Shown here piece after piece: positions 1 through 56,385 of a stretch of 64,000 nucleotides of DNA. Within the stretch, counting starts at the first letter, position 1; every line of letters begins with the position of its first letter. The position numbers were made by a program, and so were the translations under genes. Origin of the DNA: Convolutriloba macropyga (lineage: Eukaryota); the NCBI RefSeq assembly GCF_964194025.1, contig NC_134476.1, positions 37,386,001 through 37,450,000 of the forward strand, given 5' to 3'. The notes beneath the pieces were generated by a model that made no database searches, was not told where the DNA came from, and was given only the letters and a program-made list of their open reading frames with translations.

Positions 1-1
1 A

Positions 2-706
2 AATTATTACAGGAATATCCGAGAAAACTTCAATAATTTGTCGTACAACACTTTTTTCTGAAAGTTGATCGAGACCGTATCCGGGTTTTGGTAAACTTAT
101 CGAACGTATGTGGTACTTCAAAATGACGAATCGTAGTGTGTGAAGGGCAACTGAGAAGTAGTAATAAGTAGATTTATCATAATAGTTTTCTTTCCTGACC
201 AGGCTGAAGATATATCGATTTAAAGTCGTATCATAAAATGATAAAACTGAAACTATTGGCGGTTTTCGCGCAAATGCTTGACTCTGCGGTATTTCTGTGT
301 AATAGTAGGCAATTTGCCGGGCAAAGCCTTTACGCATCTTCATATCACTTGATACACAATGTACAAAAGAGCTTCTGGAGTTAAGTATATCACCTCTATG
401 ATAGAAGAATTTGGCTCTTGTTTTTCGAATTTCAATTACAATTAGGTTTGAAGTAGTTTGTTTGCTCTTTGACTGGATTCGGGTTACTTGTCTGTTCTCA
501 TCAGTTGAGCCTCGTTTATATCTCTCAATGCTAGATCGTACTTGGTCTAGTTTCGTTTCTCTAGTTGGAGTTTGATCCCTTCTTGATCTGCGCGAAGATT
601 CTGTAATTATTTGGTGTTTTTGTTCTTTTGTTAAGATTGGTGGCTGTGTAGGAGATTCGGGCAATCGTGGCGTTTGTGAACGTGAACCGTAGCGTGCTAC
701 AGGTTT
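2..706 (-). CDS. Pol C-terminal tail with TARG1/OARD1 (Poa1p-like) macrodomain; open frame runs off the window
   Basis: Hand translation: ~95 aa R/S/T/P-rich spacer, then FYHRGDILNSRSSFVHCVSSDMKMRKGFA...RYIFSLVRKENYYDKSTY...ISLPKPGYGLDQLSEKSVVRQIIEVFSDIPVII (418 to 2). This is collinear with human TARG1 motifs as recalled: YVKGDLF/LAHCISEDCRMGAGIA/RYIYYLITK/SMPRIGCGLDRL/IEEVF. In-frame TGA at 707-709 upstream. Confidence 0.88.
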
Positions 707-2729
707 TCAGGATTCAAATTTTCTGACTCCGAGCCAATTAATCTTTTGACCTGTTTAGTTGTTCTTGGCATCGTAATCTTCTTTGAAAACTTTTTGATTT
801 TCTCTGCTTGTGGAGATATTCCCTCATTTGTAATTGTGCTGCCCAGAAATTTGATTGACTGTGAGGCAATTTCACATTTTTCTGGTGACAATTTCAGTCC
901 AGATCTTCGGATGCAGTCAAAAATTTTCCTTAGACTAGTAAGTAGCTGACTAAATTCTGTTACTGCACTCCCAATATCGTCCATGAATTGTGTGCATATA
1001 CAGGCTGCTAGACAAGGGTCTAGATAATGGCGAATGAATGAACTAAAACCAGTGACTGATTTGCTAAGTCCTTGAGCTAGACATTTGTACGCGTAAGTTC
1101 TTGATGAGAAATTGAAAGCTAAAAGTTGTACTGAGGTGTCGTCCGCCATCTGTACGCAATGATAAGCTTGTGAGCAGTCAAGTTTTGTGAACAACGTTTT
1201 TCCTGCAAAATGACTAGTTGCATCAGCCATGTTTGAGATTGGGAAATGAGTGCTGTGGTAGTCATTTTTGAGTAGGTGGTTGACTCTTCTCAGGTCAATT
1301 AAAATTCGCAGTTTGCCTGATTCTTTTCTATGTGCAAATAATGGACTACTGTATTTAGACTGTGACAAAGTTGTTATAAGTCCATAGTAGTGCATTAATG
1401 CTAATTCAATATGTAGTTCGTCACGTAGATGAATTGGGGTTGGTGGTCCTTGTACATATACGGGTAGGTCATGCTCTGGGGTTAACTTTATTTTTAGTTC
1501 CGTATTGTATCCAACATCAAATCGGTGTTTGGCAAAAATGTCACAATATTCAATTAATAAATGCTCGCATTCTTCGATTTGCTTCTGGTTTAATAACGAA
1601 TTTTCCCAGTTAAATTTACTGAGAGAAAATTTTTGGTCTTCCTCATTACTTCGTGGATCGACCTTCTCCAACTTTTGGAATTTTAATATTTGGTCATAAA
1701 TTTCTTGTTGTAAGAGCGGCAAATTACTTGGATCCTCGCAAGTTTCTGGTGTTGGAAACCATAGTTTACTATATTCGGGTGGAGGTCTCCTAGTTTGGCC
1801 TGGTTTGTGTTGAGTGAAATCTTGGATAAGTTGGTTCAATTCCGCAAAATAATCATCTTTGTTTCTTGATTTTGCTAACGTTATCAGTTGTGGGTCAATT
1901 TGTATCAATTGGTCGGCTTGCTCGGTTGAGAGGATTGAGAATCTGCCCACCACTGTTCGACTATTAATTGTAATAGGGTGCTCAGTTACGTTCAGAGCAG
2001 AAACGTACAGTGTATTGTTGTTTCCTACAGTACTTAGCGAAGAAGTTAGTGCGATTTCCGTTTCTTTTTCAAGAATTTCATTGGGAGTGATTACTCCACT
2101 TTTGTTCTCAAACTGATCGGTTTTGTCTGATAGATAGCATTCCAGGAAAATTTGCTCGTTGGGCTGTATTGTGTGCTTCTTGTTTGTGTAAATGGGAATT
2201 TTCTTATGTCTTACTGATCGTCGTTTTTCGTTCACAGGCTTGATTTCATTAATTTGAACTGTCAGATCGGGCAATTGAATAAAGGCTTGTTTTGGGCTAA
2301 TTAAAATATCATGCTTGACAAAGAAGGGGTTGCCAAGGATGACCGAGTTTGTTGAGGAAAGGACGAGGAAGTCTTCAGCAAACTCTCTGTGAGCGAGTTT
2401 AAATTTAATTTCAGCTTGTTTCTCTATTCAGACTAGTTGTCCTCCAGCCATTTTAACTGAAGTGCAATCTGGTTGCTTCAATATGACTGCATTCTTGTCA
2501 GTTTCGGTAATTTCTAGGAGTAATCTGTTGCTTATGACATTTGCACAAGCGCCGGTGTCAATTAGTGCTCGACGGCTTATTCCGTTATTAAATTTAATTT
2601 TGACATAGGGAAGAAGGGATGATCTCATATTTGAGTTTATATTGTAAAGATTAAATAGTTTACTAGACTGCTCTGTAGATTTGGAAGACTGTTTGCGACT
2701 TTTGGGCGTTAAGGGTGGCTTTATTAGTT
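697..2729 (-). pseudogene. pol: pol of element A: protease, dUTPase-like domain, RT; truncated after RT
   Basis: One frame from the frameshift site: LIDTGA and ILGNPF protease motifs with a premature TGA at 2428-2430; RT motifs YSSPLF, IDLRRVN, KLDCSQAY, LAQG (1069-1080), FMDD (976-987), KC..IKFLG. Homology ends at KQVKRLIG (~733); RNase H and integrase are absent. Confidence 0.92.
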
Positions 2730-3905
2730 TTTTGATTGGCGATTAAATGGAAATGAGGTTCCTCTATTATTAGTTCTACCTCTCTGAGAACATTGACTTG
2801 ATCGATGATTTGGATAACCACATGTATAACAGAAAGTACCGCTAGATCTAGGCACAGGCATATATGGGCTGGTGGGCATGCGAAATTGTGACTGAGATAT
2901 GAAATTTCGAGGATAAAACACTTGAGCGTTAGTGTTTGGGAATCGGGGTCTCGGATTTCTATTAAGGAAGCTTCGACCTCTAGGATTGTTTCCTCTGTAA
3001 GAGTTCTGATACAGTTGGCTTGCATAGTTATTTCTGGGCGTGTAGGGCACTGCGGGAAATTGCCCCTGCCTACTAAATGATTGCTGGGGAGAGTGAGTTA
3101 CGTCTCTCTGTGTTGTTTCTATCTGTGCCGCCGTGATGCGGTCGTCAATTGTTTGAAGCTTTTTGTCTAGTGAATCTTGCGTCTGGTTCAATTTAGAGAG
3201 CGCATTGATCAAGTTTTCGGACATGGTGTTATTAATTTCATTGAACCCATCTTCCGGATAGTCATCTTTTCTGCACATGTCTCTAATTGTCATCTGTTGT
3301 CGAGCAGTGGTGCAGAGATCGGTAACAAGCGTGGCTGGTGGTTGTTCCATCAATTTTGATCGCAGCCATCCCGGCATGGCTGCGATGAAGATTAGTTTTA
3401 CTTGTTCGTTCTTATTGTCCTCCGCCGCTTGCAATCTAGCAGCTCGTGCGGCTGTTTCTCCATCGAAGCGTGCGTGCTCTGCTCTATCCCCTGCTCCTCC
3501 ATCTCCTGGAAGCGCTAATGCTGCAACTGCTGGCAGATTTGGCGTTGGATACGCACGCTGAGCCTTTGTTTGTAGGTTCACTAGGAAATTTTCGGGGCTG
3601 TCTGTTTTTGGGTCAAATCGCAGTTGTTCTAATTTAAGAACGTGTACTTCTTGCAAATCTTGATTCGCGAAGTGGTCCCTGAGTGCTGTGAGACTTAATT
3701 CAAGATCATTTCTGGTTGCTTCGGGCAACGTTTGAAAATATCTTAACGCGGCGTCTCGGAGTTGGAGTTGCAAAAAATTTGATTGTTGGTTGGCAGGAAT
3801 TGCTGCGACACCAATAAAACCTCGGAAAAGGTGCTCAAATTGGCGGAAACTTTGATTTTTGGCTCCGCTATAGGGCTCTACTGTTATTTGGGCGTTTGCG
3901 GCCAT
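2724..3905 (-). CDS. gag: Gag of element A (393 aa, intact)
   Basis: ATG start, retrotransposon capsid-like N-terminal half, R/N/P-rich linker, zinc knuckle CYTCGYPNHRSSQC (CX2CX4HX4C). Confidence 0.92.
   Translation of the reverse strand: MAANAQITVEPYSGAKNQSFRQFEHLFRGFIGVAAIPANQQSNFLQLQLRDAALRYFQTLPEATRNDLELSLTALRDHFANQDLQEVHVLKLEQLRFDPKTDSPENFLVNLQTKAQRAYPTPNLPAVAALALPGDGGAGDRAEHARFDGETAARAARLQAAEDNKNEQVKLIFIAAMPGWLRSKLMEQPPATLVTDLCTTARQQMTIRDMCRKDDYPEDGFNEINNTMSENLINALSKLNQTQDSLDKKLQTIDDRITAAQIETTQRDVTHSPQQSFSRQGQFPAVPYTPRNNYASQLYQNSYRGNNPRGRSFLNRNPRPRFPNTNAQVFYPRNFISQSQFRMPTSPYMPVPRSSGTFCYTCGYPNHRSSQCSQRGRTNNRGTSFPFNRQSKN
2727..2733 (-). promoter_or_regulatory. -1 ribosomal frameshift slippery heptamer A-AAA-AAC (gag/pol)
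   Basis: Minus strand reads TCA AAA AAC TAA at the gag stop; the -1 frame is open without stops into the protease ORF. Confidence 0.85.
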
Positions 3906-3978
3906 CTTAGTTTCTTATAATTTTAAAACTGCACTGGATGAAATTAAAGGTGATGATCTGGATGGGCTGGGAATGCAA

Positions 3979-4323
3979 TTATTCAGAAATTACGATGAGG
4001 GGAGATTCAAAATCATCTAAATCAATGTCATAGCCATGGGTCATGAGATGTCTAACTTTAGAAAATTCGCGTGCTTTTTGTCGCAAGGTCTTGGGGATAA
4101 ATATTAAGGCGCGTTTGTCAATAGAATTTTGAGTTAAAAGCAACATTTGTTTTGGTTTGTCAGATACAAAGGCACTAACAACTGTTGAGATAATAAGGTT
4201 GTTAGTTTGGGGGCTAATGAATTGTATATAGTTACAGTCTACATATTCCACAAAATGATTTGAGTTGCGGCAGTTATTAATAACAGGGAGTATTTGGGTA
4301 TTATATAAATCGCGGGAAGGCAT
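3979..4323 (-). CDS. Leader accessory ORF3 of element A (114 aa, unknown function)
   Basis: ATG-started intact ORF (MPSRDLY...) between PBS and gag, same strand, ending 73 nt before the gag ATG. Confidence 0.55.
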   Translation of the reverse strand: MPSRDLYNTQILPVINNCRNSNHFVEYVDCNYIQFISPQTNNLIISTVVSAFVSDKPKQMLLLTQNSIDKRALIFIPKTLRQKAREFSKVRHLMTHGYDIDLDDFESPLIVISE

Positions 4324-4465
4324 TTTAATTTAGCACCAAAATTTATATGTTCTAACTCACAGTTTCCAAATTGACTCGATTTGGTTGCCAATAAGGGGTT
4401 TCACTCTCTCATTCTGTGTGTATGTGTCTCAGTGTGACGTCACTGTCATTTGGCGTCACCTTCTT

Positions 4466-4633
4466 TTAGACTCCAATCTCTGTTGCATTGACAATTGATA
4501 ATTGGAACGAAAAGCTAATGGCGCTGTTTGTCATGAAGAGGTAAATGAAGAGTGCTGTGATCAGATAATAAGCAATGATGGAGAAGATAAAGAATGCTGC
4601 AGTAAAATATAAGCAAAATTTGTTGAGAGACAT
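4466..4633 (-). CDS. Leader accessory ORF2 of element A (55 aa, predicted transmembrane micro-protein)
   Basis: Hand translation MSLNKFCLYFTAAFFIFSIIAYYLITALFIYLFMTNSAISFSFQLSIVNATEIGV*; about 29 consecutive uncharged, mostly hydrophobic residues. Too short for the ORF track. Confidence 0.5.
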   Translation of the reverse strand: MSLNKFCLYFTAAFFIFSIIAYYLITALFIYLFMTNSAISFSFQLSIVNATEIGV

Positions 4634-4663
4634 CGGTAATAGGACAACTATAAAGTACTAAGT

Positions 4664-4996
4664 TTAATTTGAATCTCCGCTTTCGCATATTAATTGAGTT
4701 TTCAGGCTTTCTAAGTGGAGATGCATTTCCCTTTTAATGTGCCTAATTGCTGCTTTGAATTCATACTGATTGTCGAATGATACTATTGCAATGAGCCTGT
4801 CTCTATAGTCTTCTGTAAGTCCAACAATAAAAATAATGAAAATTTTATCTTCAAGAAAGATAGAGTACGTTTCTGCGGAGGTATTTTCGATGTTGGGGCT
4901 TCCGTAAGAAAAGAGTGTTAAATCAAATTTGTGCAGTTGTCTAACTTCATCTGAATCGTGCAATTAACTCAATAATGTTTTGAATAGCAATGGCAT
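4664..4996 (-). pseudogene. Leader accessory ORF1 of element A (~110 aa, one premature stop)
   Basis: ATG at 4996 is in frame with the 99-aa track ORF: MPLLFKTLLS*LHDSDEV...; single TAA at 4964-4966. Confidence 0.5.
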
Positions 4997-5067
4997 TAGG
5001 AAAAAGAAACATTTAAAAGATAAACAATTTTGTTTTTTTTGAAGGAACTAATTGGAAAAGCTGTCTA

Positions 5068-5081
5068 CACTCCTGTCACCA
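5068..5081 (-). promoter_or_regulatory. Primer binding site, tRNA-Leu-like
   Basis: TGGTGACAGGAGTG directly after the LTR end; resembles the complement of the eukaryotic tRNA-Leu 3' end (...CACTCCTGACACCA). Confidence 0.75.
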
Positions 5082-5387
5082 TGTAATATACCTTTGTCCG
5101 GCTATATTATTGCGTTGAATTTGTTGAAGTAATGTTTCTCGCTAGTTTAATTAACATCTTAATAACATAACTTTTGTCTCTTAAATTATTCTTTTCACGT
5201 GATTGTTCAGGGCCTGAGCGGGTTTTCAATTTTACTTCGGAGCAGGGCCGACAGCTATTAGTTTTGTCACTAGAGAAAAGGGGGTTCCAATCTAAGACTG
5301 AATTTTTTGTCTGCTGATTTATAACTTGACAATCTTGGTTGTGTCGCTTAAATTATTACTTTTTAAGACCTGAGGGTCGTATTTACA
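5082..5387 (-). repeat. 5' LTR of element A (~306 bp)
   Basis: Bounded by TGTAA...TTACA inverted termini and abutting the PBS; the partner LTR is outside the window, so the outer boundary is inferred. Confidence 0.75.
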
Positions 5388-7854
5388 TTTGAGTAATCAC
5401 TTATACAAATACATCAAGATTAACTCAAGATAAATAGAACTTCTGGCGCGTGCTGACACGTGCCAGGCAAATAAGATGAACATAGTAAAGTGTACATTGT
5501 AAATATAAATACCGGTTAGCACTATCACAAATTCCTCTGTTATGGGTAAATCAAATAACAAAAGATAATTAAATGGTTTTTAGAACAAATATACTTGAGA
5601 AAGTTTACAGGATATTAAATAAAGTAAATATACATTTTCTCATCTTTAGGAACAAAACGTACTTTAGGACGTTACACAGCATAATCAACAAGAGACGCTA
5701 TAGATTGTTTCAGTTGACCCAAATTCTGATTATATTTTCATCTAAGCAAAATAATTATAATTTTCATAGATTTGCAAAACGATGATAACCTTTCAAAGAA
5801 TTAATAAAAATCTTTTATTGCTAGGAATTCCAAAATACATTACCCCCAAATTAAATGACCTATGATGCGCATTATTACTAAGTAAAAAAACGATGGCGGA
5901 ATGTCTAAAAACTACAGCTTTAAATTTTGGTCATAGCAAAAGTGGAAACTCAAGCAAAATGGCTCGCATGATTCTGTACATGGCAAAGAAAGTTCCCATA
6001 CTTTTGGCATCATTCAGAGTATTATGTCACTACATTGGGTGGGCTACAGCAATAACACTTGCATTCGTAACATAATTTTGCTTTCAGTAGGCCACCGATC
6101 AGATTTTTGCTTCAGTAAGTTCCCAAGACAGGGCGCCAAATCAAAAAGATGGATATAATCAAAGATATATCAAAGATATCAAAGATCAAAAGATATCGAA
6201 TTACGTTCATTTTTGATTGAAACTGATATCTACGCCCAATCCTTATCCCAACGTCTACAGCGAGGTGCAGTGAATTTTTACTGAAAAATAATGTCAATGC
6301 TCTACAGTATCGCGTGAATGAACTTCCAAACATTAAAAAGAATCAAGGTTAAGACGATCATGAAAAACACTTGATGGTTGAAGGATGCAAGGAAATGAAA
6401 TTGGAGTCCTAACAAGCCTGCATTATCTTCACAAAGCGAAAGCAACCACAGTTGAGTCATCTTGTAAGAAATAAACAAAATCTCTCAAAACTACTCTTTC
6501 AGAATGACATGAAATTTTTATTCCAAGTCAGAAACCAGTCGGTTCCAAAAAGTGGTCAGACAAATCGTTTCAAAAATACTGATACACTGACGTTCAGAGA
6601 TGACAATAGAATACTCAGCCAAAAACAAAATTAGGCTCCATAGATTTTTTTTGTTGGGATATCACAAGCCCAGCTTTTTGGTCGACAACATTCAAAGAGA
6701 ATGTAAACATTCCACAAAGGGATCTTATCTTTCAAGTAAGTAAAGCACCCCAAGTTACAGAGCATGTGTAGTTAAAAACGAACCGTTTTGTAAAAAAAAT
6801 GACAACCCCTAAAACTGGGGGTACAAAAGTAGAGGATTCAAATAAGCGATGCGTAACTTCAACAACAGGAAAAAAACTCATGCAAAATTTGGAATTCGCT
6901 CATAACAACGCGAAGCTTTATCAGCGCATCAATTGACCTGAAAGTATATCGGCCGCAATAATACATTGGAGCAATGCCTCTGGTATAATTTGTATATATT
7001 ATATAATTAAGCTGAAAAGCGTCAGAATTGGCCAACCAGTCAAAATTGTTGCCAAAAAGAATAAACAAAAAGAACAAGAAAAAGAACAAACAATTTTCAA
7101 AAACTTCAGCTTCAATCCGCTGGTCACCCAAGAAAAAAATCAATAAAGCGAATCTGACCTTTGGAAGCTTCACAAAAACAGCCTTTCAAAGATTGACAAA
7201 ATGACTGCCGCATTGTCAACCTCAAAAACATTGCAAAAAATTAACTGTCACCCCATAAAAAATCTCATTAAAGAAATTTGCCATTTACACCAGGAAGCTT
7301 CGCTAAAACAGCATTGAAATGATTAAAATATGATATAATCTATGCAGCAACATTAAACATCAACAGTGATTTCTGGCATCATGTAGGATACTTTGCCTGC
7401 ATTATCACAATAATATGCAAAAAAACTTAAGCCGCCAATTTTTTTCCACCTTTTAAAATAGTTAGTGAAACTAAAAAATTCGAAAATTCTCCCCACTTCA
7501 TCAGAAATAGTAACTTTTGAAATTGCAATCTGCTCTGAAACTTTATGGTCATTGAAGACACAATTAGTTACATAAATTAAGATAAAAACTCTAAGAACGA
7601 TGCAAGAAGGGTACTCAAGAAGCTTAGATAAAACTTTCAATAAGCTTAGCGAATCGTTTAAACGTGATTGCACAATAAATAAAGAAGGCCAATCTGAAAG
7701 AGTCGCAACGTCATCGAAGTATGGTCTCTTAATATTAGTGAAGTTAAAAAGATAGATAACCAAGTTGACGAAATTTATTTAATGCAAGCTGAGAAAAATA
7801 ACAAGAAGGCACAGTAATGTGAGTTTGCACCTAAGGTATCAAATAAACTTTAAA

Positions 7855-13947: not shown

Positions 13948-14246
13948 TGTGGTACCCCGTGGTATCCACTAACAACCTAACCTATCATTATTGCAGTAAA
14001 TTCATATTCAGTGAAATGCCGTACATTTGTAGCCTTCTGTTCTATGCGCCTCTCAATCGTACCACGATTGATTACCACAGTGACTGGTAGTTGTAACCTT
14101 CAGCTCAACTATCACGTTGGCAGCGAATTGCCTAATCGCAGTCTGCCTTAACGTTAGTAATCAACAGTTGTCATTGAACATCTTTTGAATCACCTTATTC
14201 AGCATACCAGGCTTATCGAATAGCGCAACACTTTCCGAGCACAACA
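13948..14246 (+). repeat. 5' LTR of element B
   Basis: TGTGG...CAACA; 7 substitutions versus the 3' LTR, counted by eye. Confidence 0.97.
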
Positions 14247-15330
14247 TGGCGCAGTCAGACAAAATAGGACGCACGGCGCTAGGACTTGAACCCTTCTGGA
14301 ACAAACCTAGCAGTAACCCACCAATATCATGGGAGAAATGGAGGAGTCAACTCAAAATGGCCCTCGTCGCTAAGACAAACATCGAACTAGATGAACTACT
14401 CGAAGGAGACCGACGACAGTCATTTACCCCCCCCCCCCGAACCGGTAGAGGAACAACCCGCACAGAATCCAACACAAGCAATGGAAAGAGAACGAATAAC
14501 GAGGTACCACCAGGCAATAGCCAAATGGAAAAACGAATGTAATCAAATCGATGGAATAGGGGTCCAATGCGGCGACAAACCATGGGACATGGCAGATAGA
14601 AAAGCCAAACCTCTGATCTACCTTAGCCTCGGAAGTGAAGGACGAAAGATGCACGCAAGAAAGTTATCCCACACAAACGTGGAATCAAAATCAACAATGG
14701 AACTATGGGACGAATTAGAGCAAACGTTCATCCGCCCAAGAAATGTAACGTTCGATAGATACCTTCTGTTGACACGCAAACAACACCGAGGGGAAACAAT
14801 GGAACAATTCACTGTCAACTTGCCGATTTAGAAGATGAACTCCTAAGGGATATATTCAGCGCAAGCATGATAGATCAAGAGATACAAAAAGAACTGCTAA
14901 AAACAACCCTCACCCCAGAAAAGGCCCTCGAACTAGCAGTGAGTATCGAATTAGGCATCAGAAGCCAATTAGCCATACAGGCAGGGCAACCATTGGATGC
15001 TTCGGCAACACCATTTAATGGACGAGAGGAACCAGTCATGGAAATCTCAAGCTCACGCTTCCGGGGATCACCACCAACAACACCGCGAGGTATGGGTAGA
15101 GGAAACGGCAGAGGCATGAACAATAACAACATAGCATCCACTCACAACTGCAGGAACTGCGGACAACCCTGGCAAGGCGGACAACCCTGGATAGCAACCA
15201 CCGAGCAAGGTGCCAAGCAATCGGCCAAACGTGCCGCCGATGCAACAAACAGAACCACTATGCGAAGGTTTGCAGATCCAACCTTAATAGACCCCAATCC
15301 GGAAGATCTGTGAACGAAATCGACAACCAG
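14246..15330 (+). pseudogene. gag: gag of element B (frameshifted)
   Basis: MAQSDKIG...WEKW..., FDRYLLLTRKQ..GETMEQF, knuckles CRNC..H..C and CRRCNKQNHYAKVC spread over several frames. Confidence 0.9.
14247..14256 (+). promoter_or_regulatory. Primer binding site, tRNA-Ser-like
   Basis: TGGCGCAGTC immediately after the LTR; complement of a ...GACTGCGCCA tRNA-Ser-type 3' end. Confidence 0.75.
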
Positions 15331-15333
15331 TGA

Positions 15334-18300
15334 TTGGACCAACAAACACAGGGCATAAACATGATCTCACTAAACCCGGACACCCACTCGTCATACAAAG
15401 ACTCAGCGGACGAATACTCAGTTAACATGATGGAAACACCGGACGACCTCACAACACCATCAAAACTACAAATCCAATATGGTCAGAGTAAATTCTGGGT
15501 AATGGTTGACTCAGGAAGTTCCACTAGCATCGCCACGGAACAAATGGCGAAAGATATAGAGGCAAGAGACATCAACACGTGGTGGAGCAGAACAACAAAT
15601 CCACTGAAACTAAAGAGCTACACCGACACCCCTATAAAAACCCTGGGAACCCTCTACTGCGACATTGAGTGCAACGGCTGGAAGGCAGGACGCGTGGACA
15701 TCATAGTGGTCCCGGACAAACACCGAGCGATTGTGGGAAGGGACCTGTTCGAACCCCTAGGAATACAACTAAAACAACACGACTCCCCAAAGTCCTCAGG
15801 TAAGAACGTCAACTCAATAGACACCCCTCAAACCCCCTCAATCAAGGAAGAAGTAGCAATTAAATACAATAACCTAACAACCAGAATAGGACGATCCATA
15901 CACCATAAGGTAAAATCACAATTTAAGTCAAACTACACCCCCGTCCATCAAAAAGGAAGACGCGTACCACTACACCTCGAAACACAAGTAGAAGAACTAA
16001 AAAATTTACAGAAAAACAGACATATAACCAAACTAGAAAAATGTAGCGACGAATTTTTCATATCACCTATCATAATAACAGTGAAGAAAGAAATCAATAA
16101 AACGAGCAATGGAGTCGAAAACAATCAACAAATCAATTCACAAAAACAAATATCAGATGCACAACATCGACTGCCTAATGGACAGCATCGCACAAACCAT
16201 CACTCAATCGTCCGACGAAGGAGAAGTCCTATTCTCAACAATAGACCTACGCTACGCATACAGCCAATTACCACTCGATGACGATACAGCAAAAAAAATG
16301 CAATTTCAATATCATAGGCGGTCAAGCCAAAGGAACATATCGATTCAACACTGGATATTACGGACTAACAGATATGCCGGCAGAATTCCAAAAAGCCATA
16401 GACAAAATTTTATACAACCTATCGAATACATTGTTTTCTGGACGATATCATTATTGTTACAGGAGGTGGTTTACAAAACCATAAAGAAAAATTGTTCAAA
16501 TGCCTAGACAGACTAAATGAAGAAAACCTGGCAGTAAACGTTAATAAATGCCACTTCGCAAAAATAAGATAACTTGGCTAGGCTATGAAAAAGACCAAAA
16601 AGGTATTAAACCAATCGTCTCTAAGACACAGGCAATACTTAATCTGAAGCTACCCTCATCCCATAAACAACTCAAATCATTCTTAGGAAGCGTCCACCAC
16701 CTAACGAAATTTATACCAAATCTAGCACCCCTATGTCGCGAATTAAGAAACTTACTACAAAAAGATACGAAATACGTATGGACAAATCACCACCAAACAA
16801 AGTTCGAAAACATAAATAAATGCATACGCAACCTGACAGAAAACACACATTATGACACAAAAAGAAAGACCGGAGTTAAAACAGACGCATCAAGATCGGG
16901 CCTAGGGGCAGTCCTCGAACAAGAAACTTGCAACGGGAGGAAGACAATATCCTACGCCCCAAGATGATTAAATAAAGCAGAAAAAAATACAGTATAAACG
17001 AATTAGAATTATTAGGAGTTGTATGGGCGTTAGCACACTTTAAACACTATTTATTAGGTTACCATTTCACAGTACAAATCGACCAGAGGGCTCTTCTATC
17101 AATGCTTAAAGAACGATCAAGTAAAATCCACCAAAGCCGCCTAACCAGGTGATACGATAGATTAATTCGATCCAATTTTACTATAGAACACATAGCCGGA
17201 ACAAAGATGGGACTAGCAGATTACATGTCCCGAAATCCATCCGAACCTGCAAAACCCCCGAGCACTTATGACGAAAATTTTATAATAGCTCAAATAGACG
17301 TCATAAAAAAACACTAGAAATCATACGTAAAAGAGGCAGACCAAGGAAACTAAACAATAACAAAACACAGCACAACACATTAACGACGCACAACGATTCC
17401 AATGACACAAACAAATACAATGGAATCGTCCAACGATTCCAACCATTCCCTATATTGCCAAACCAAACGACAGAGATGCAGGCCCAGAAAAGCAAACGTG
17501 GAATCGTCGACCGATTCCACACTAACAAAAAACAATACCGACAAACGCGGTATGACTACAAACAACTCACCAAAGAATAGAAAACACAGCCTACGCAGCA
17601 GTCACAAGACATTCCAAATACAACAAAAACAACGGATAATGACGTCACTAACAATACGCAAGACAAACAGCAAACGAATACACACGCGCATTTGCCAATT
17701 AACACAGCTATACTCCAACAGCATAATTCAAACAAACAACACAATTTAACAAATCAAATGGAGCACACAACAAATAACCCAAATAGCGCCACCGCGAAAT
17801 CACCAGTGCAGAAAACATCCTTCTCAATGAGCAACTACCTAAGCCCTACCCCAAAAGCATCGCCTCCTAAATCAGACGACCAACTCTCAAAACAACTGGA
17901 GAGCGTGTTCAATCAACAACTAATTGCAGCAATGATCAATAGAGATACGGTGCAACGGGAGATCAGAGACTGCATAACCAATGAGGACCAAGCTCGATGC
18001 AAAAGCCTGAGCAAGCAGATATACGCAAAATGGGGAAACCTAAGCGTCAACAACGGCTGCATACTGGTGGACAACAAATTAGCAATACCCAACATCCTGA
18101 AGGAATCTGTAATGAACGTCCTCCATGCAACGCATCCAGGAGCGTGGGGCATGACTGAACTAGGGCAGAGATTATGGTGGCCATTCATCAACCGAGATTT
18201 AATCAATAAATCCAAAACGTGTCAACCCTGTACCGAATTTGGTAAGAATCTTAAAAGCTTAATACGAAAGTCCGATTGGACACAAACAACAAATACACAA

Positions 18301-19612
18301 TAGACAAAAGTCCGATAAACAAATACATAACCCAACACGGAGTACCTAGAAACATTAGACTAGATCAAGCCAGATGCTTAAAAGGTAATAAAATACAACA
18401 ACTATGTAAACGATACAACAATGAATTATTATATGCCCCAGCTAACGACCATCGCCCAATAGGACTAGTAGAACGTCTAGTACAAACCGTCAAACGACGA
18501 TTGGGCTGCATAAAACTCGACCCCAATCAGAAACCGTTCAATATTAAGAACGCCCTACAAAACATATCATTTGAACTACGCACATGCAGAAAGAAAAATT
18601 CAAAACTCTCCCTTATCGAAGCCCACTATGGAAGAAAAGCGAACACCGCACTAACAAACATAACATCTAAACCAAATATCAAAAACTTAAATTGGTCAAA
18701 CACTTTAAATACTATTTAGATGACAACATCATAGGAGAAGAGGAACTCATCAGTCAGGAAAAATGGTATGACGAGGATCTAGATAGTGATGCCGAAGTAA
18801 AAGCAACGAAACAACGGAAGCTACAGGAGGCCAAAGATGACGAAGGTGAAGTACCCCGAATCATCAAACTCCCAGCCGCCAACTTCGAAGAACCATTAGC
18901 CAGAAACAGCCCTCGACTCCAATTAGCCCGCAAAACTCTTGCCGCCTCGCGAAACAAGAAGCAACTGCAAGGACTCTATGAGGCCATTCCGGTGGGGGCA
19001 GCACTCGTCAAAACAGCTGACAGCACAGTAACGATCAAAGTACCAGGCCAGCAGGACACCTCAATAAATCTGATGTCGCAAAATTCGGCACGCCAGAGCA
19101 ACGCCACATTCGTCATTAATTTCGCCGCCAGAAAGACCGTGCGCAATCATCATGCAATGCTCATACAGAGCATGGAATCACACGCACAAGACATCAAAAA
19201 CAAGATCGTCGGCCAACGAGCCATCCGCAAAAGAGCACCCCAAGCGTCGGATTTAGACAAAAAGGCAAAAGCCAACCTCGCAAAGGTCAACCGCATCAGA
19301 ATCCCACCTAAAAGAACCTATCAGCCATCACCCAGAAAAGGATCTCCCAAAAAGAGAAAGCTCTCGACGGCATCATCACAAGAGTCAGCAGACGAACAGG
19401 GCGACGAACTCCACGAGTCCGATACTAGCCGAGATTACAAAGCCGCACCCAAACAACCCGAAAGTACATTACTAGTGGAAACAACTGGAGCATCCACCCG
19501 ACGCAGAGCACGAGACAAAAAGAAGCCGAAACGGTACGGTGATCTCACAGAAATGTCATCCTCGGATGAATCGTCGGACAATGACAAGCCCCAAAACATC
19601 GAAGAGGAATAA
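15334..19612 (+). pseudogene. pol: pol of element B (PR, RT, RNase H, integrase, long C-terminal tail)
   Basis: VDSGS protease; ISPII, IDLRYAYSQL, FLDD (16435-16446); TDASRSGLGAVL, ELELLGVVWA; HATHPG..CQPC; HGVPRNIRLDQ, GLVER. Multiple frameshifts; the first catalytic Asp region of the integrase core is missing near 18290. Confidence 0.93.
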
Positions 19613-20139
19613 GCATCGCTTCCTATTTTCCACCCAGAACAACCCTTGCTGAAACCACGTCACTGCCGCCCCACAGCGTAATACCTTTGACCTTATCCAG
19701 CCATATCCACCCGGCCGAAAACATTGGAATCGCTCCAAGACATCAGCGAAGACCGAACCCACGGAGATATGCTTGCGATCTTCAAACAGGACCAACCTGA
19801 ACGCTCCCTTCAACCCCACAAATTATAGTCAACAAAGTTAAAAACTCAAAAACTCTGATCATAGTAAAACTCCTAGCTCAAACTTATTATGTTGCCCTGT
19901 CATATTACTTGAAAGTATCTGTAACCATTAATTGTAGTTACAATAGCAACCACCAAACCTCTAGTGCTCACATTTGCAACCCACCACCAAGACATAACCA
20001 TAGTTGTTACTAGTTCTCATCGCCCTAACGCGCTCAGTACTTTACACTGTTAACAACCTTTCAATTGTTACTAAAAGTTCATCAAATTGTATTCATACTC
20101 AATCATCACTAACCTTTATGTTATTTTGAAATTTTCTCT

Positions 20140-20150
20140 AGAGGGGGAAA
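20140..20150 (+). promoter_or_regulatory. Polypurine tract of element B
   Basis: AGAGGGGGAAA immediately before the 3' LTR. Confidence 0.9.
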
Positions 20151-20449
20151 TGTGGTACCCCGTTGTATCCACTAACCACCTAACCTATCATTAGTGCAGT
20201 AAATTCATATTCAGTGAAATGCCGTACATTTGTAGCCTTCTGTTCTATGCACCTCTCAATCGTACCACGATTGATTACCACAGTGACTGGTAGTTGTAAC
20301 CTTGAGCTCAACTATCACGTTGGCAGCGAATTGCCTAATCGCAGTCTGCCTTAACGTTAGTAATCAACAGTTGTCATTGAACATCTTTTGAATCACCTTA
20401 TTCAGCATACTAGGCTTATCGAATAGCGCAACACTTTCCGAGCACAGCA
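20151..20449 (+). repeat. 3' LTR of element B
   Basis: Direct repeat of 13948-14246, followed by TSD AGATC. Confidence 0.97.
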
Positions 20450-20894
20450 AGATCAATTGATAAGTTCGATATGTTCCAGTGATTACCACAGTGACTGGTA
20501 GTTGTAACCTTGAGCTCAACTATCACGTTGGCAGCGAATTGCCTAATCGCAGTCTGCCTTAACGTTAGTAATTAACAGTTGTCACTGACCATCTTTTGAA
20601 TCACCTTATTCAGCATACTAGGCTTATCGAATAGCGCAACACCTTCCGAGCACAGCAAGATCAATTGATAAGTTCGATATGTTCCAGTGATTACCACAGT
20701 GACTGGTAGTTGTAACCTTGAGCTCAACTATCACGTTGGCAGCGAATTGCCTAATCGCAGTCTGCCTTAACGTTAGTAATTAACAGTTGTCACTGACCAT
20801 CTTTTGAATCACCTTATTCAGCATACTAGGCTTATCGAATAGCGCAACACTTTCCGAGCACAGCAAGATCAATTGATAAGTTCGATATGTTCCA
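20272..20894 (+). repeat. Tandem triplication, 208-bp unit spanning LTR end, TSD and flank
   Basis: Units start at 20272, 20480 and 20688 (tgattaccacag...). Confidence 0.95.
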
Positions 20895-32800: not shown

Positions 32801-33367
32801 TCAAAAAACAAAACGCATGTAACTGCACTTTATTTTCCGTAAACTATAGCATACATATATGCTTCCGCACTATTTATATACTCAAAACTAATTATTCCAA
32901 ACATGAAAACCAAAATGCATTTCTTCCTTTTTGAAAAAGTTTCGCTCTACAAGGGTCGTCGGTCAATTCGAGGGCAACATATCAACACACTCCTATATAC
33001 AAACAAAATCTGACAGCCAGCAAGAGCGAAGGACGTCGTATGAAATAAGTACTCAATAAACGCAGTTGGAAGAAATCAAATTGATCAGAAAACATTTAAG
33101 ATTTAACCACAAAAATAGAAAAGAGCGTTCATCGATGATCGTCCGAATTGCTAATTCGACTGGAAGGCGCACGAATAAGAATCTTATTTCGAAGTAACAT
33201 CGAAAAACATTTGTCAGCAACAGAAATTGTGTAACTTCAGGCAGCCAAAAAAACGTTCTCAAATTCTACAACTCGCTTAGATATCATGAATAGCATGAAA
33301 AGGTTTTCGAAAAGAAACGCCTCTCCCCAACACTCCAACACTCGGTGAATATTGGCTGGTAAGGGGC

Positions 33368-34280
33368 CCTCCCCGCTCGACGCCTACTGTTCTCACCTCT
33401 ACTACAAAGAAGCTGTCAAAAATATCAATAGATACCTTAAAGATCTTAATACCTTCTTCCATAGAAAACAGTCGTTTCCCTCGCCCTGGAAGTGCTCTGC
33501 CATTCTACTATCCACCACCCACTCAGACTGGAAAGATTTAGATGTTGTTCTGGGTACGGACCGGACAAAAACAGTCAATGATCATTACTCGTTCCACCTT
33601 CAACTACGCTGCTCCTTGCTGGTCTTTGAATGTTTCCAAAACCAATTGGAATAAGCTTGAAAGTAAACAAGACAAAGAATTGAGAGTTGTAACTGGATGA
33701 ACAAAAATGACCCATATTGACTACCTTCGCCAAGAAACGAGACATCTCACCGTAGAAAATCACTGCAAAGTTTGACAGCCCAGTTTGCAGCCTCAATTCA
33801 TGAACCCAACCACCATTGCAATGATCTATTGACGAAACCCACCTATAAATGGAAGGAAACGCTTTTCAGTTTTGCAAGAAATTGTGAAGAACGTATGAAG
33901 TTGAAATGGAAATTCCAAAGGCGCAGAAGACCCCACACAGCAAAGTCGTTGATTTTACGATGAGAAACAGTGAACCCAACAGATTACTTCACCCCATTCC
34001 CAGCCTAACCCCGAAGAACTTGACAGAGGCGAGCCAGGACTCTTCCGAGAAGAAAGAAAATTCCTCTCTGAAATGAGGTCTTCCTATTGCCCTCTGTTAG
34101 ACTTCAAAAACAAAATCAACAGCGACGAATCAGATACTTGCAGGAAATGCCATAAAGAGCGTGAATCAGCAGCGCACGTTGCTGAACAAGTTGGTGGAAT
34201 CAAGTGCGAAGATCGTTGGTGGTCCTCCGAAGAATCGATCTCGACGCTAGAAGAAATCCTGGTCTAAACAACAACACAAC
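33368..34280 (+). mobile_element. 5'-truncated non-LTR retrotransposon (I-group/Ingi-like), present only in duplication unit 1
   Basis: RT thumb-like ITRSTFNYAAPCWS..KLESKQDKELRVVTG, C-terminal CRKC..ESAAHV..C, stop followed by a (CAA)-like tail; absent at the equivalent site ~36710. Confidence 0.75.
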
Positions 34281-34329
34281 AATACTGCGACGTCTTCTTC
34301 GAAAGAAAGGGAAAATAATCTAAGGCCAC

Positions 34330-35180
34330 ATTAAACCATATCAACATTAGCGAAAAAGTAGAACAAGTCAAAAAGCATCAAAACATTAAAAAAGCCTGCG
34401 GCCTAGACGAAATTGAATCATTGTCTTTAAAAAGGCAGCAATACAAAATCTTGCATTAAAGCACCAATCTGCAAAGTTGGACAAGGCGGAGATCTCAAAC
34501 TACAGTCCAATTGCCCAGCTAGTTAACGCTTCAAAATTATTTGAAAGAGTGTAGGGAAAAGAGATCAAATGTACTGAAGCTGTTAATCTACCTCGAGTAA
34601 GTCTAGGGAAAGCTCGACTTGAGGTACCCAGAAATTGTTGCCATTAATTCGGACTTGCTCAAAATTTTCGATGAAAATGTCGCCTGAAAAATTGATACAT
34701 AAAATCAGTCAAATTGGAGTTTGGGTAAGCTTCTGTAGCAACCTGCTAGTTAGTTAACAGACCGTAAACAAAGGTTTACAGTGAGAAAAAGTCTTATCAA
34801 GTGCATCAGTTATTACTTCGGGCGTACCACAAGGTTTATAATCGGGCCACTCATGTTCATAGTGTTCACCAATGAATTGCCAGAAAACACATGATCGTTA
34901 ATAAAATCGAATAGGCCAACAACATGCTGTAATTCACAAAACAAAACCCAGCCAGATGAAAAATGAAAAAACACAGCAAAATTGAAAAATCTGCTCCAAT
35001 CTCGAGACGAGGCAGAACTGGAATAAAGCAACTATACAGAATTTTTATAGCGGTGACAAAAATATTATCAATATGCACATCGAGCTACAAGACCATCCAA
35101 TTCAAAATTTATGCATCAGAAGACAAAACTCTTAAAACGACCAGAACGATGCTGCAAACGGAGCTATAACGAATTGAAAT
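34330..35180 (+). pseudogene. Decayed CR1/L2-like RT fragment (unit 1, internally deleted)
   Basis: KACGLDEI, NYSPIA, SGVPQGL..GPLMF motifs. Confidence 0.7.
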
Positions 35181-36769
35181 TCCTCTTGACACGTCTCAAA
35201 AAGTCCAAAGAAAACTTCTGAATCCTTGCACATTGAGCTAAAAGACCTTCCAATTCAAAAATTACGCATCAAAAGACATTTTCTATAAGTACCAGAACAA
35301 TGCTGCTAAGGGAGCTATAACGAATTGGATTTCTTCTTGAAACGTCCAAAAAAATTCTGGATCCTTGCATCAAAGCTTTAAAACAACCAGAAAATGCTCG
35401 AAAAGGCAAAAATGAAAACGAACATGATTACAAAATTCTATATCACCTAATTTCGACGGTGCTACAACGATCTCGACACCTGCCCGCGGCAAAAGTTAAG
35501 TTCCCGCAGAATATTTTAATCATGTTGAATTGAAAGATTGACATTAATTTCGAATTTTTTCAACAACGAGGTCTCATGTCTTAGAGGTCCTCAATACAAG
35601 TTTTTTTGCACTATCAGAACCAACAACACTATCTAATAGTCTATAACCACCAACTATTTCAACTTATTTTTAAATGTTAACACAAATCCACTGTGATATT
35701 TCAAAATGATGTTTTTCGGTAATAAAATTGCACTTGGTAAGATGACAAACGAAAGCAGGATCACGCTTTTTCAACGAGTCAAAAAAACTTTTCCAACTAT
35801 CAACAAATCCGACAGCAACATCACAAAGAAAATCTCTGGATCCTTGCACCAACGCTACGAAACAGCCAAAATATCCTCAAAAAAGCAAAAATGAACAAGC
35901 AGATGATGATAAAAATCTATCTCAACTACTTTCGAGGGTGCTGCAACGATCGCAACACTTGCATATGGCGAATCTTAGGTTCCTGCAGAAGCTGTAGCCC
36001 ACAAAAAAACCAAGCCAGATTACAGTTGAAGAATTCATCACCACCCGTGCATTACGCAAAAACCACTACTACTGCTGCTAGTACTAAAAAACTTTGTTTT
36101 CCTAGTGACTCTCAATAAAAAAACAAATACACATAGATATCAGTTTTAAAAAAAAGCAAAACAAAAGATATACAACTATTCAAAACAAAGAAAATATTGG
36201 CAAGCTACACCGGTCAAACTAATAGCTTCCCTTCGTCAACATCAAGGCCCATTGGGGCATCAAAAATCTCAGGGCGCCTAAGTGTCATAGAGCCTCGAAT
36301 GCAGAAGATGGAGCTCCTAAGAAGATCAAGCAGATATTTGATCTGAGGTATAACATGATGTAAGCGTCGCTGTTGTTTTCTTGTGGAGAGAGCGAAGGAG
36401 GTTGTATAAGTACTCAATAATCGCGGTTGGAAGAAAACAAATTCATCAGGAAACATTGAAGATTTAACCGTAAAGTTAGAAAACTTCGTTCATCAATGAT
36501 GGTTCCAATTGCTGATTCCACTGGAAGGCGTACGAATAAGAATCTTATTTCGAAGAAGCAGAGAAAACCATTTTTCAAAAACAGAAAATGTGTAACCTCA
36601 GGCAGCCAAAATGATATTTTTTAGATATCATGAATAGCATGAAAAGATTTTTGAAAAAAAATAAGAAACGCCTCTCTCCAACACTCGGTGAATATTGGCT
36701 GGTAAGGGGCTCACACAGCACAACATCTTCATTGAAAGAAAGAAAAATCAAAAGCCACATTAAGCCATA

Positions 36770-38050
36770 TCAACATTAGCGAAAAGGAAGTAGAACAAGT
36801 CATGAAACATATAAACTTTATCAAAGCCTGCGTCCCAGACGAAATTGAAACATTGTCTTGAACAATGCAGCTATACAAAATCATGCACTAAAGCACCAAT
36901 CTGCAAAAATAAAGACAAGGCGTAGATCTCAAACTACAGGCCAATTGCCCTGCAGGTTGACGCTTCAAAAATATCTGAAAGAGTGCTATTCAACAGGCTG
37001 TATCCTTTGATAGAAGAGGCTCTCCATCCTTCCCAATACTGCTCGAGGGAAAAGAAAATAGTTATACTGCAGCTGGTATCCTACTTCTAGAAAATCTAAG
37101 GAAAAATCGACCCGAAGAAGCCAGAAATCGTCCCCCTTTATGTGGACTTAGGCAAAACTTTTGATAAAAATGTTGCCTGAAAACAGTGCATAACCTCAGG
37201 AAAATTGGAGTTGGTGGTTAGCTTTTGCAGCAACCTGCTAAATGGTTAATTGATTGATGAACAAACGATTAGAGTAGGAAAAGTCACATAAAATGCATCA
37301 GCTATCACTTTGGGCGTATCACAAGGGTTTATAATGGGGCCACTCATGTACATGGTGTTCTTTAATCATTTGCCAGAAAAAAAACCATCGTTAAAAATTT
37401 CGATTATGTTGACAATATGTTGTAATCCACAGAACAAAACGCAGCCAGATGAAAATTGTTGTTCAAAAGCAGAGGAGAAACAAGCGCATCACTCAAAAAA
37501 TTGACTGCTTGAGCATCAAAAATGACAGGTAAAAAAACAAACCAAAAACGAAGAATCTTTTGCTCCAATCTCGAGACGAGGCAGAATTGAAAAGCAACTC
37601 TACAGAACTCGATCGCAGTAACAAAAATAATGGTTACAGTAATTAGTTACAACCTTCAATGTACTGAGAACTTTGCAAGGTGAGCGGCAAACTCGCTTAA
37701 ATGTTTCCAATTTATAAAAAGAAATACTTCTCCAAAAGTATTAATATCTACAAAACTAAACGCATACATCAGTTACGTAGTCCATGTAATCACATATGGA
37801 TTCCAAGTCTGGCATCCTTCCAAACCTGATATGAGAAATATCGATATAATAAAACACAGTACTGCATGGATTCGCAGGACAAGATCAGATTACAAAAATA
37901 CGCTCATTGCTCTAAACATCCTGCATTTGTCCTTGCACATCGAGCTACAAGACCATCCAATTCAAAAATTATGCATCAGAAGTCAAAACTCTTAAAACGA
38001 CCAGAACGATGCTGCTAACGGAGCTATAACGAATTGAAATTCCTCTTGAC
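36770..38050 (+). pseudogene. Decayed CR1/L2-like RT fragment (unit 2)
   Basis: KACVPDEI, NYRPIAL..SKISERVL, YVDLGKTFDK, GVSQGFIMGPLMY..NHLP. Confidence 0.78.
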
Positions 38051-38388
38051 ACTTCTCAAAAAGTCCAAAGAAAACTTCAGAATCATTGCACATCGAGCTA
38101 AAAGACCTTCCAATTCAAAAATTACGCATCAGTAGGCAAAATTGTTATAAGACCAGAACAATGCTGCTAATGGAGCTATAGCGTATTGGATTTCTCCTTG
38201 ACAGGTCCCAGAAGTTCAAAAAAAATCTGAAGCCCTGCACCAAAGCTACAAAACAATCAGAAAATACTCCAGAAGGCAAAAATGAACACGAACATGATTA
38301 AAAAATTCTATATAAACTACTTTCGGCGGTGCTAAAACAATCTCGACACCCGCCCATGGCAAATGTTAGGTTCCCGCATAAAATTTGA

Positions 38389-39060
38389 GCAGTAGTAGTA
38401 GTAGGAATTTGGCCCTTCGATGTCGTCGGGCGCGGGGACCGTGTCCCTTTTCTTTATCCATGGTTGCTGTTAAATTTTCCACGTATCGCTGACTAGTTCA
38501 TTGTAACTCGTTTCAAAATGATGCCACAGGAAATTGAGCAGTCGACTTTTCAAACCCGCTGCATTTCCAAATTGTAAACTGTGGAAGTCTATTCATAAGA
38601 GCACAAGTTCTATAGAAGAAGCATCGCTGGCAAATTTCAAGATGTGGTTTTGAATGGTCGAATTTCAGATCGTTGTCACTCCGATCTGAGTTATCCACAA
38701 AAGAAAACCAAACAAGACGACACCAACCGTTCATAGGAGACTTCAATATTAGGGACTCGAGGAATTAAGAACTTCAATTTATGCCTACATGATGAAGCGA
38801 ATATTTGAAACATGTTAGGTGAAAGAGTGGTATGAATTTCTAGCTTTTCAACAAAGACATCCCCTGTCTCAGAGGTCCTCAATACAAGTTCTTTTTGCAC
38901 TATCAGAACTTATAACACTATCCAATAGAGTATAACCACCAAATATGTCAACGTATTTTTAAATGTCAACAAAAATCCACTGTGATGTTTCAAAATGATG
39001 TTTTTCGGTAATAAATTTGCTTTTGGTAAGATGACAACCGAAAGAAGGATCATGCATTTT
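38389..39060 (-). mobile_element. 3' end of a CR1-like LINE with (TAC)n tail
   Basis: LEICQRCFFYRTCALMNRLP resembles CR1 C-terminal FFxR..N.LP; tail TACTACTACTAC on the minus strand at ~38391-38404. Confidence 0.6.
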
Positions 39061-56185: not shown

Positions 56186-56385
56186 NNNNNNNNNNNNNNN
56201 NNNNNNNNNNNNNNNNNNNNNNNNNNNNNNNNNNNNNNNNNNNNNNNNNNNNNNNNNNNNNNNNNNNNNNNNNNNNNNNNNNNNNNNNNNNNNNNNNNNN
56301 NNNNNNNNNNNNNNNNNNNNNNNNNNNNNNNNNNNNNNNNNNNNNNNNNNNNNNNNNNNNNNNNNNNNNNNNNNNNNNNNNNNNN
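56186..56385. other. Assembly gap (200 N)
   Basis: Run of exactly 200 N. Confidence 1.

Follow-up and report, generated by a model that had tools for sequence, protein, structure and literature searches.

A 64,000-nucleotide stretch of the Convolutriloba macropyga genome (assembly GCF_964194025.1, contig NC_134476.1, positions 37,386,001 to 37,450,000 of the forward strand; hereafter the window) opens with a long terminal repeat (LTR) retroelement. Retrotransposons are commonly regarded as minimal gag-pol machines kept silent by the host. The initial annotation of this locus described a single virus-like element with three leader open reading frames (ORFs), a frameshifted gag-pol, a pseudo-dUTPase, an unusual reverse transcriptase (RT) and a macrodomain, and proposed an undescribed lineage with accessory genes for counter-defence and possibly for cell-to-cell spread. 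Our analyses indicate that window positions 1-5676 are the 5′ part of a decayed, non-autonomous copy of an env-carrying Ty3/gypsy endogenous retrovirus (“errantivirus-like”), a reading to which we give a probability of roughly 80%.

The ORF listing and its translation show one LTR retroelement, which lies on the minus strand and is truncated at the start of the window; no further copy of it was found elsewhere in the window. Its parts follow the order LTR, primer-binding site (PBS), long leader, gag, -1 frameshift site and pol, the last with protease (PR), a dUTPase-like domain, RT and macrodomain (Table 1). The RT-bearing piece matched 539 relatives among the proteins of ENA assemblies, and the closest of these led to the sister copy L001; L001 to L012 denote sister and related copies outside the window. 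One of them, L007, looks intact. Its LTRs are 99.4% identical, and it has two leader ORFs, a 400-aa gag and a 1788-aa Pol, after which come a 381-aa antisense ORF and then an 806-aa ORF before the 3′ LTR. The LTR pairs of sister copies are 98-99% identical, as in young insertions, and in L001 the LTR pair is accompanied by a 5-bp target duplication. The natural 1788-aa Pol of L007 (P0262) belongs to the same family as the window copy (a cluster at 90% or more) and holds PR (residues 9-102), the dUTPase-like domain, RT (RVT_1, 434-599), RNase H (665-797), integrase (IN, 1005-1171), a disordered linker and the macrodomain (1662-1765) in one uninterrupted ORF. The linker between IN and macrodomain is ~250-350 aa long, proline/serine-rich and of low complexity, and other natural ORFs read through it likewise; L012, from a third assembly, also has integrase and macrodomain in one called ORF. 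Since these Pol ORFs run through the linker without interruption, the macrodomain is the C-terminal domain of Pol.

The pol of the window copy is different. Against P0262 it aligns as two blocks in two frames, with two in-frame stops, and a single frame-changing internal deletion of ~2.7 kb (~900 codons) has taken the end of the RT, RNase H, integrase and most of the linker; the last ~10 pol codons lie beyond the window. Because of this deletion and the two stops, the window copy is a decayed, non-autonomous element that is unable to make a working Pol. The proximity of RT and macrodomain in the window is likewise an artefact of decay, as one internal deletion lies between the two blocks. The idea of a whole element with an odd domain order must thus be given up, since RNase H and integrase were lost by internal deletion and two in-frame stops are present. 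The same layout might be taken to mean that the macrodomain is foreign to the element, a truncated gypsy pol having been fused, by a deletion or nested insertion, with a host macrodomain gene or another repeat. The RT does almost adjoin the macrodomain in the window, in a different frame, and the macrodomain region is ~86% identical to the sisters as against ~92% for the rest. We find this hardly credible, given a natural sister whose uninterrupted Pol ORF runs from protease to macrodomain, the presence of the macrodomain between integrase and 3′ LTR in seven families from three assemblies, and the fact that one internal deletion explains the window layout. The sister Pol ORF and the recurrence across families led us to reject a chimeric or nested-insertion origin of the macrodomain.

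Assignment of the element to Ty3/gypsy is based on its LTR and PBS, its domain order and the best solved relative of its RT. The LTRs have TG..CA ends and the PBS adjoins the 5′ LTR. The Pol order PR-RT-RNase H-IN is found in P0262, of which the window copy retains PR and RT only, and the Pfam RNase H families matched are the Ty3/gypsy-type PF17917 and PF17919. Among solved proteins the Ty3 RT is the best relative (E 3.6e-13), scoring above those of foamy virus (3.3e-10), human endogenous retrovirus K, cauliflower mosaic virus (CaMV) and murine leukemia virus (MLV). As judged from these sequence characters, the element is probably Ty3/gypsy. The LAQG and FMDD letters that had been called unusual are indeed present in the RT and are family-wide. 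In 30 relatives the motif letters are kept in 30 (L), 29 (A), 26 (Q), 30 (G), 30 (L) and 30 (DD) cases, whereas F (13) alternates with Y (14) and M (17) with V (13). LAQG also occurs in relatives without the extra modules, so it is a trait of a broad group. The RT therefore does not serve as the lineage-defining oddity that it was taken for, with LAQG in 26-30 of the 30 relatives, including those without modules, and F alternating with Y. In the printed alignments LAQG resembles the LPQG of foamy virus; the Ty3 tetrapeptide differs, yet the Ty3 RT scores better. The dN/dS of the RT is 0.07, and across the window copy, L001 and L007 pol shows a third-position bias with p=9e-22.

The macrodomain reported by the initial annotation was borne out by comparison with solved proteins. 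The window piece matched the human OARD1/TARG1 structure 4j5q (E 2.8e-9) and the DarG-type macrodomain 5m3i (E 0.0036). The window piece alone gave no Pfam match; the macrodomain of P0262, 79% identical to it, reached 25.9 bits for Pfam Macro (cut-off 22). The residues that align with the catalytic Lys84 and Asp125 of TARG1 are Lys and Asp in the window copy, and across families that are 32-40% identical the Lys equivalent is kept in 15/15 copies and the Asp in 13/15. The domain is constrained, with a dN/dS of 0.32-0.44 between copies together with a third-position bias. Because these catalytic residues are kept across such diverged families, we infer that the macrodomain is an active ADP-ribosylhydrolase. 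How K84 and D125 contribute to TARG1 catalysis has been described (PMC9967889; bioRxiv 10.64898/2026.03.31.715305), and TARG1 and DarG remove ADP-ribose from both proteins and nucleic acids (same sources). The window macrodomain end was also compared separately with the sisters: positions 1-730 have ~86% DNA identity and a dS of 0.40, while gag and RT have ~92% and 0.20-0.32.

The macrodomain would travel with the integrase and the reverse-transcription complex, and it could strip the ADP-ribose that PARP-type enzymes of the host attach to proteins or nucleic acids of the element. Macrodomains of viruses are known to serve in counter-defence, and by analogy a counter-defence role is a reasonable inference here rather than a result. 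The main rival is that the macrodomain acts as a reader which steers integration to ADP-ribosylated chromatin or proteins, much as the chromodomain of chromoviruses steers integration to marked chromatin. It lies where a chromodomain would, after the conserved C-terminal region of integrase and a linker of low complexity. Env elements with a chromodomain have been described (PMC13524379), and the macro module is tandemly duplicated in one family (L003). We nevertheless consider a pure reader unlikely, as the residues aligned with TARG1 Lys84 and Asp125 are kept in nearly all copies and a pure binder needs neither. The reader and eraser roles are mutually compatible.

The sister copies also bear on the suggestion of cell-to-cell spread. 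An 806-aa ORF in L007 and a 757-aa ORF in L003 lie 3′ of pol in the position of env, and the window ends before this region. We found 110 homologues of this env. Pfam Baculo_F was matched in 3/30 env homologues (best E 3.6e-7), and an env profile gave only weak class I fusion matches to solved structures (HA2 and pneumovirus F, E 0.04-0.5); single env and JmjC proteins, when searched against solved structures, returned nothing useful. Its sequence shows a signal peptide and a C-terminal membrane anchor, together with 14 cysteines and 6 sequons, and an RxKR site immediately precedes a hydrophobic fusion peptide. On these features it is predicted to be a class I fusion glycoprotein of the baculovirus F type. 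Cell-to-cell spread therefore gains an F-type env in the intact sister copies, but not in the window, outside which env lies. We propose that env would allow cell-to-cell transfer, as in insect errantiviruses.

The related copies carry, on the opposite strand, a gene whose product resembles JmjC proteins; it is located between the macrodomain end of pol and env. Pfam JmjC (PF02373) is exceeded in the L005 family, with 25.6 and 25.4 bits (cut-off 24). In the window's own family the Pfam match is faint, and hhalign links this family to the L005 family with 92.6% probability. The His-x-Asp/Glu...His metal triad and the 2-oxoglutarate Lys are invariant across four families. The nearest solved proteins, KDM7, KDM2A and PHF8, are weak matches (PDB E 0.02-0.1). 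The JmjC protein may act as a demethylase or hydroxylase and could thereby oppose silencing marks. A peculiarity of this cassette was noted in two sister copies: between L001 (15453-17826) and L007 (15991-18530) its proteins are 40-54% identical and the cassettes do not align at the DNA level, with flanks of 93% DNA identity. Either inter-family module exchange or very fast evolution would account for this divergence.

Whether the modules belong together was examined over seven families, from three assemblies, of which the families L003 and L004 are represented by partial copies. All four modules, dUTPase-like domain, macrodomain, antisense JmjC gene and env, occur together and in the same order in L001/L007, L002, L005, L011 and L012, and the partial L003 and L004 also have the macrodomain. 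The co-occurrence of the modules in other copies, on which the initial annotation depended, is thus found for the dUTPase-like domain, macrodomain, JmjC gene and env in the seven families and three assemblies. Its view of a complex, retrovirus-like Ty3/gypsy lineage with extra modules holds as well, as the modules co-occur across families and the macrodomain lies inside one Pol ORF. Other relatives have fewer modules. L009 and L010 possess the dUTPase-like domain, env and a JmjC gene after env, and no macrodomain; of two more distant relatives, L008 gave a weak dUTPase-like match only and L006 none, and in neither was a macrodomain, JmjC gene or env found. The minus-strand ORFs of L006, L008 and L003 showed no similarity to the JmjC family and matched no Pfam family. 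Since L009 and L010 have the dUTPase-like domain, env and JmjC without a macrodomain, the macrodomain looks like the latest addition among the modules. From the same sequence comparison, the JmjC gene appears to be older than the macrodomain in the group and to have been relocated.

Several of these copies are rearranged. In L003 (3639-12790) the linker plus macrodomain forms a tandem repeat with a unit of ~2.4 kb, 94-97% identical, giving three macrodomains in one element. L004 (12636-22421) contains ~1.2-kb tandem units with the integrase region, in six or seven copies of ~97% identity, and this array is followed by repeated integrase-macrodomain units. L005 (2274-13288) has a 5.5-kb direct repeat, 99.9% identical, in the order LTR-gag-partial pol-LTR-gag-pol-macro-JmjC-env-LTR, which is a tandem or recombinant arrangement with a shared middle LTR.

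The initial annotation also listed a pseudo-dUTPase, and a dUTPase-like fold was confirmed between protease and RT. An AlphaFold model was made of the 525-residue open stretch with a 30-sequence alignment, and residues 25-115 form a beta domain with a predicted local distance difference test score (pLDDT) of 80-90, followed in pol by a helical stretch and the RT. Foldseek searches with the model returned RTs on top (foamy virus PR-RT, Ty3, CaMV and MLV) and dUTPases after them. The matches were human dUTPase in the PDB (E 2.8e-4, TM 0.49-0.55) and viral dUTPases in BFVD (E 5e-5 to 3e-4). Pfam dUTPase (PF00692) was found below threshold in 12/30 relatives, with a best E of 7.4e-4. The folded domain has ~90 aa as against 125-140 aa in the target dUTPases, and its dN/dS of 0.12 indicates strong purifying selection. 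Taken together, the model supports a dUTPase-derived fold between PR and RT; membership in the dUTPase enzyme family is not supported, and a catalytically dead (“pseudo”) domain is plausible. In L001 (8943-10154), part of the protease and dUTPase-like region is duplicated in tandem over 609 bp (98.5% identical), an arrangement seen in neither the window copy nor L007.

The coding part of the window copy upstream of pol is well preserved. Its gag shares 94% identity with the 400-aa gag of L007, the alignment having a single 7-aa gap and no stop, and shows a dN/dS of 0.14 and a third-position bias with p=3e-11. Pol lies in the -1 frame relative to gag with a 16-nt overlap between the two. The A AAA AAC heptamer at the end of gag is kept in L001 and L007, and an in-frame AAAAAAC also occurs within the longer gag/pol overlap of L005, which belongs to a different family. 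No stable RNA structure was predicted downstream of the slippery site (z +1.07). Of the frameshifted gag-pol that had been claimed, the -1 geometry and the canonical slippery site are observed, and Gag-Pol would be produced by -1 ribosomal slippage at A AAA AAC.

The leader ORFs did not fare as well. Besides the 99-aa and 114-aa ORFs there are further small ones, a few of 50-57 aa, and the initial annotation counted three as accessory genes. In support of genuine genes, the 114/115-aa ORF is open in the window copy, L001 and L007, is full length in 11/15 listed members of the cluster, and has few second-position changes (9, 3 and 10 by codon position). However, between the window copy and L001, where 15-22 changes were available, dN/dS was 0.45 for the 99-aa ORF and 0.52 for the 114-aa ORF, indistinguishable from the off-frame controls (0.6-1.6 for the 99-aa ORF, 0.6-3.4 overall). 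Codon-position tests over the window copy, L001 and L007 were not significant (p=0.46 and p=0.14, respectively, vs p=3e-11 for gag), and the share of intact copies is what the short length predicts from the decay of gag, which is intact in 6/15. There was no Pfam or structure match for these ORFs, and no homologue was found in the leaders of related families, which are ~30 to 590 nt long. Real accessory genes are consequently improbable. The ORFs are most likely chance, non-coding ORFs in a long family-specific leader, with less certainty for the 114-aa ORF. Scans of the leader and LTR for tandem repeats and for promoters or terminators gave nothing of note, and an Rfam search of the window gave no match.

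The extent of the element had to be redrawn. The initial annotation bounded the LTR at 5082-5387; its inner edge is right and its outer edge is not, because the repeat matches both LTRs of L001 and L007 as far as 5676. The element therefore spans window positions 1-5676 and not 1-5387. The window LTR is ~100 bp shorter than the 692-bp LTR of L001. There were no tRNA genes in the window or the sister loci with which the PBS could be compared.

Table 1. Features of the window copy and of the JmjC genes in related copies.
Feature	Locus and position	Strand	Details
5′ LTR	window 5082..5676	-	595 bp, TG..CA ends; blastn against both LTRs of L001 and L007
PBS-like stretch	window 5064..5081	-	TGG start, immediately after the LTR; identical letters after the L001 5′ LTR
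Long leader	window 3906..5063	-	between PBS and gag; 1.2 kb; family-specific
Leader ORF	window 4664..4963	-	99 aa (110 aa in L007)
Leader ORF	window 3979..4323	-	114 aa (115 aa in L001 and L007)
gag	window 2724..3905	-	393 aa, intact, weak C-terminal CCHC knuckle
Slippery heptamer A AAA AAC	window 2727..2733	-	gag frame, ends at the gag stop, within the 16-nt overlap
pol	window 1..2742	-	broken, cut by the window edge; tblastn of P0262, blastn against L001/L007
Retropepsin (protease)	window 2323..2604	-	weak Pfam aspartyl protease matches in the window piece, L001 and P0262 residues 9-102
dUTPase-like beta domain	window 1930..2202	-	between protease and RT; AlphaFold model, Foldseek
Reverse transcriptase (RVT_1)	window 832..1329	-	Pfam RVT_1 E 5.5e-24; LAQG and FMDD
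Macrodomain, TARG1/OARD1 type	window 17..412	-	PDB OARD1 match; C-terminal Pol domain in intact copies
Antisense JmjC gene	L007 16706-17851; L001 16178-17344; L002 12436-13563	-	between macrodomain end of pol and env
Antisense JmjC gene	L005 16054-16872; L011 15789-16805; L012 16086-16893	-	between macrodomain end of pol and env
JmjC-like gene	L009 18739-18963; L010 18793-19539	-	after env

The rest of the window holds many other decayed Ty3/gypsy pieces and repeats. Positions 13948-20865 are occupied by a second, unrelated decayed Ty3/gypsy element in which PR, RT, RNase H and the integrase zinc domain are still traceable. Its 299-bp LTRs are 98% identical, and beyond its 3′ LTR region come two additional, diverged copies at a spacing of 208 bp. 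A third Ty3/gypsy fragment lies on the minus strand at 59500-64000; its RT occupies 61979-62386, and a trace of the integrase zinc finger lies at 60262-60660. Segmental repeats, tandem repeats and an N run were recorded at 33045-39589 and 49153-57793, 51287-52586, 43722-44108 and 56186-56385. The segmental repeats are diverged and form two pairs (74-95% identical), with distances of ~2.4-3.4 kb and 6.1-6.8 kb; the others are a 500-bp and a 129-bp tandem repeat in three copies each, and 200 bases of N.

Some of our observations weigh against the reading of this locus as part of an env-carrying Ty3/gypsy endogenous retrovirus with additional enzymes. The window itself holds a dead copy only, and both env and the JmjC gene are outside it. 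The Baculo_F match is weak in most env copies. For the JmjC protein, the AlphaFold model (10-sequence alignment) had a mean pLDDT of only 27.8. The gathering score of PF00692 was never reached, the window protein has no Pfam dUTPase match at all, and a four-sequence profile of the dUTPase-like domain matched no solved dUTPase. The macrodomain evolves faster than the RT (dN/dS 0.3-0.4 vs 0.07), and its counter-defence role is drawn by analogy with the macrodomains of RNA viruses.

With these points in mind, a bolder proposal can be put forward only tentatively, and we think it more probably wrong than right. It holds that the element represents an undescribed env-bearing Ty3/gypsy clade with two host-derived enzymes, an integrase-fused TARG1-type ADP-ribosylhydrolase and an antisense KDM2/7-like JmjC demethylase, both aimed at host control. 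If true, the JmjC demethylase would erase repressive histone methylation on the provirus, e.g. from the PIWI-interacting RNA pathway, and the TARG1-type hydrolase would free the element's proteins or nucleic acids of PARP-type ADP-ribosylation. This would provide a natural example of a transposon with its own anti-silencing enzyme, and the idea that invertebrates restrict retroelements by ADP-ribosylation would become testable. As for the window copy, it is an ordinary dead insertion; the lineage to which it belongs keeps up to four extra modules under purifying selection, namely the dUTPase-like domain, a predicted integrase-fused ADP-ribosylhydrolase, a putative antisense JmjC oxygenase and a probable fusion envelope. 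The macrodomain and JmjC gene point to ADP-ribosylation and histone methylation as host controls that are possibly answered enzymatically. There is also a lesson for annotation, since what looks like a macrodomain or JmjC “gene” in such genomes may belong to a retroelement.

Comparison with known systems shows which of these features have precedents. The claim of an undescribed lineage was overstated, as env-bearing Ty3/gypsy elements, the PR-dUTPase-RT order and macro ORFs have all been published; what is left of it is the integrase-fused macrodomain and the antisense JmjC gene. Neither a Ty3/gypsy Pol with a macrodomain nor a retrotransposon with a JmjC gene was found in the searchable literature, a scope that leaves Repbase and subscription journals outside, and on the sequence evidence the integrase-fused TARG1-type macrodomain and the antisense JmjC gene would be what is new here. 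Env-carrying Ty3/gypsy elements are widespread across Metazoa (Chary and Hayashi, eLife 2026, PMC13524379). The errantiviruses among them (Drosophila gypsy/ZAM/Idefix type) resemble our element in the order LTR, PBS, gag, pol and env, in PR, RT, RNase H and IN, in an F-type Env with a furin-like site, fusion peptide and membrane anchor, and in the many young copies per genome (PMC13524379). In contrast, that survey mentions no macrodomain, dUTPase or antisense gene, whereas the present lineage has two extra domains in Pol and, between pol and env, an oppositely oriented JmjC gene. Errantiviruses also have a bridge region after RNase H, with a “pseudo” RNase H in the insect group and a “mini” domain in the ancient group (PMC13524379); in the window copy this region lies in the part that was deleted.

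The position of the dUTPase-like domain is shared with Juno, Vesta and TelKA of bdelloid rotifers, in which a dUTPase lies between PR and RT (Rodriguez, Kenefick and Arkhipova 2017, PMC5408684). These elements likewise possess additional ORFs for enzymes, and a paramyxovirus-F-like env is present in one of the lineages (PMC5408684). Compared by description, however, their extra ORFs are a DEDDy exonuclease and a GDSL esterase and not a macrodomain or JmjC protein, and the dUTPase-like domain of our element is too diverged for a Pfam call. With chromoviruses it has in common a chromatin- or modification-related domain appended C-terminally to the integrase; unlike in chromoviruses, this is a macrodomain with catalytic residues instead of a chromodomain, and the disordered linker is much longer. 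Fish epsilon-like endogenous retroviruses are reported to carry macro-domain ORFs (Basta et al. 2009, as cited in PMC4977317), and so also represent retrovirus-like elements with a macrodomain as an extra coding module. As far as that citing account describes them, they are vertebrate Retroviridae in which the macrodomain is a separate ORF, in contrast to the Ty3/gypsy Pol fusion described here.

The JmjC product is comparable to the KDM2/KDM7/PHF8 demethylases in having Pfam JmjC above threshold in one family, an invariant triad and Lys, and these proteins as its best, weak, solved matches. It differs from them in being short (270-410 aa), in having no PHD, F-box or CXXC domain, and in its antisense position within an LTR element. 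For the macrodomain, those of corona-, alpha- and hepeviruses may be regarded as functional analogues. By sequence, its best solved relatives are TARG1/OARD1 and DarG (ALC1-like class), and it retains the catalytic Lys and Asp, although identity is ~30% and the macrodomain of the present lineage is fused to a retroelement integrase.

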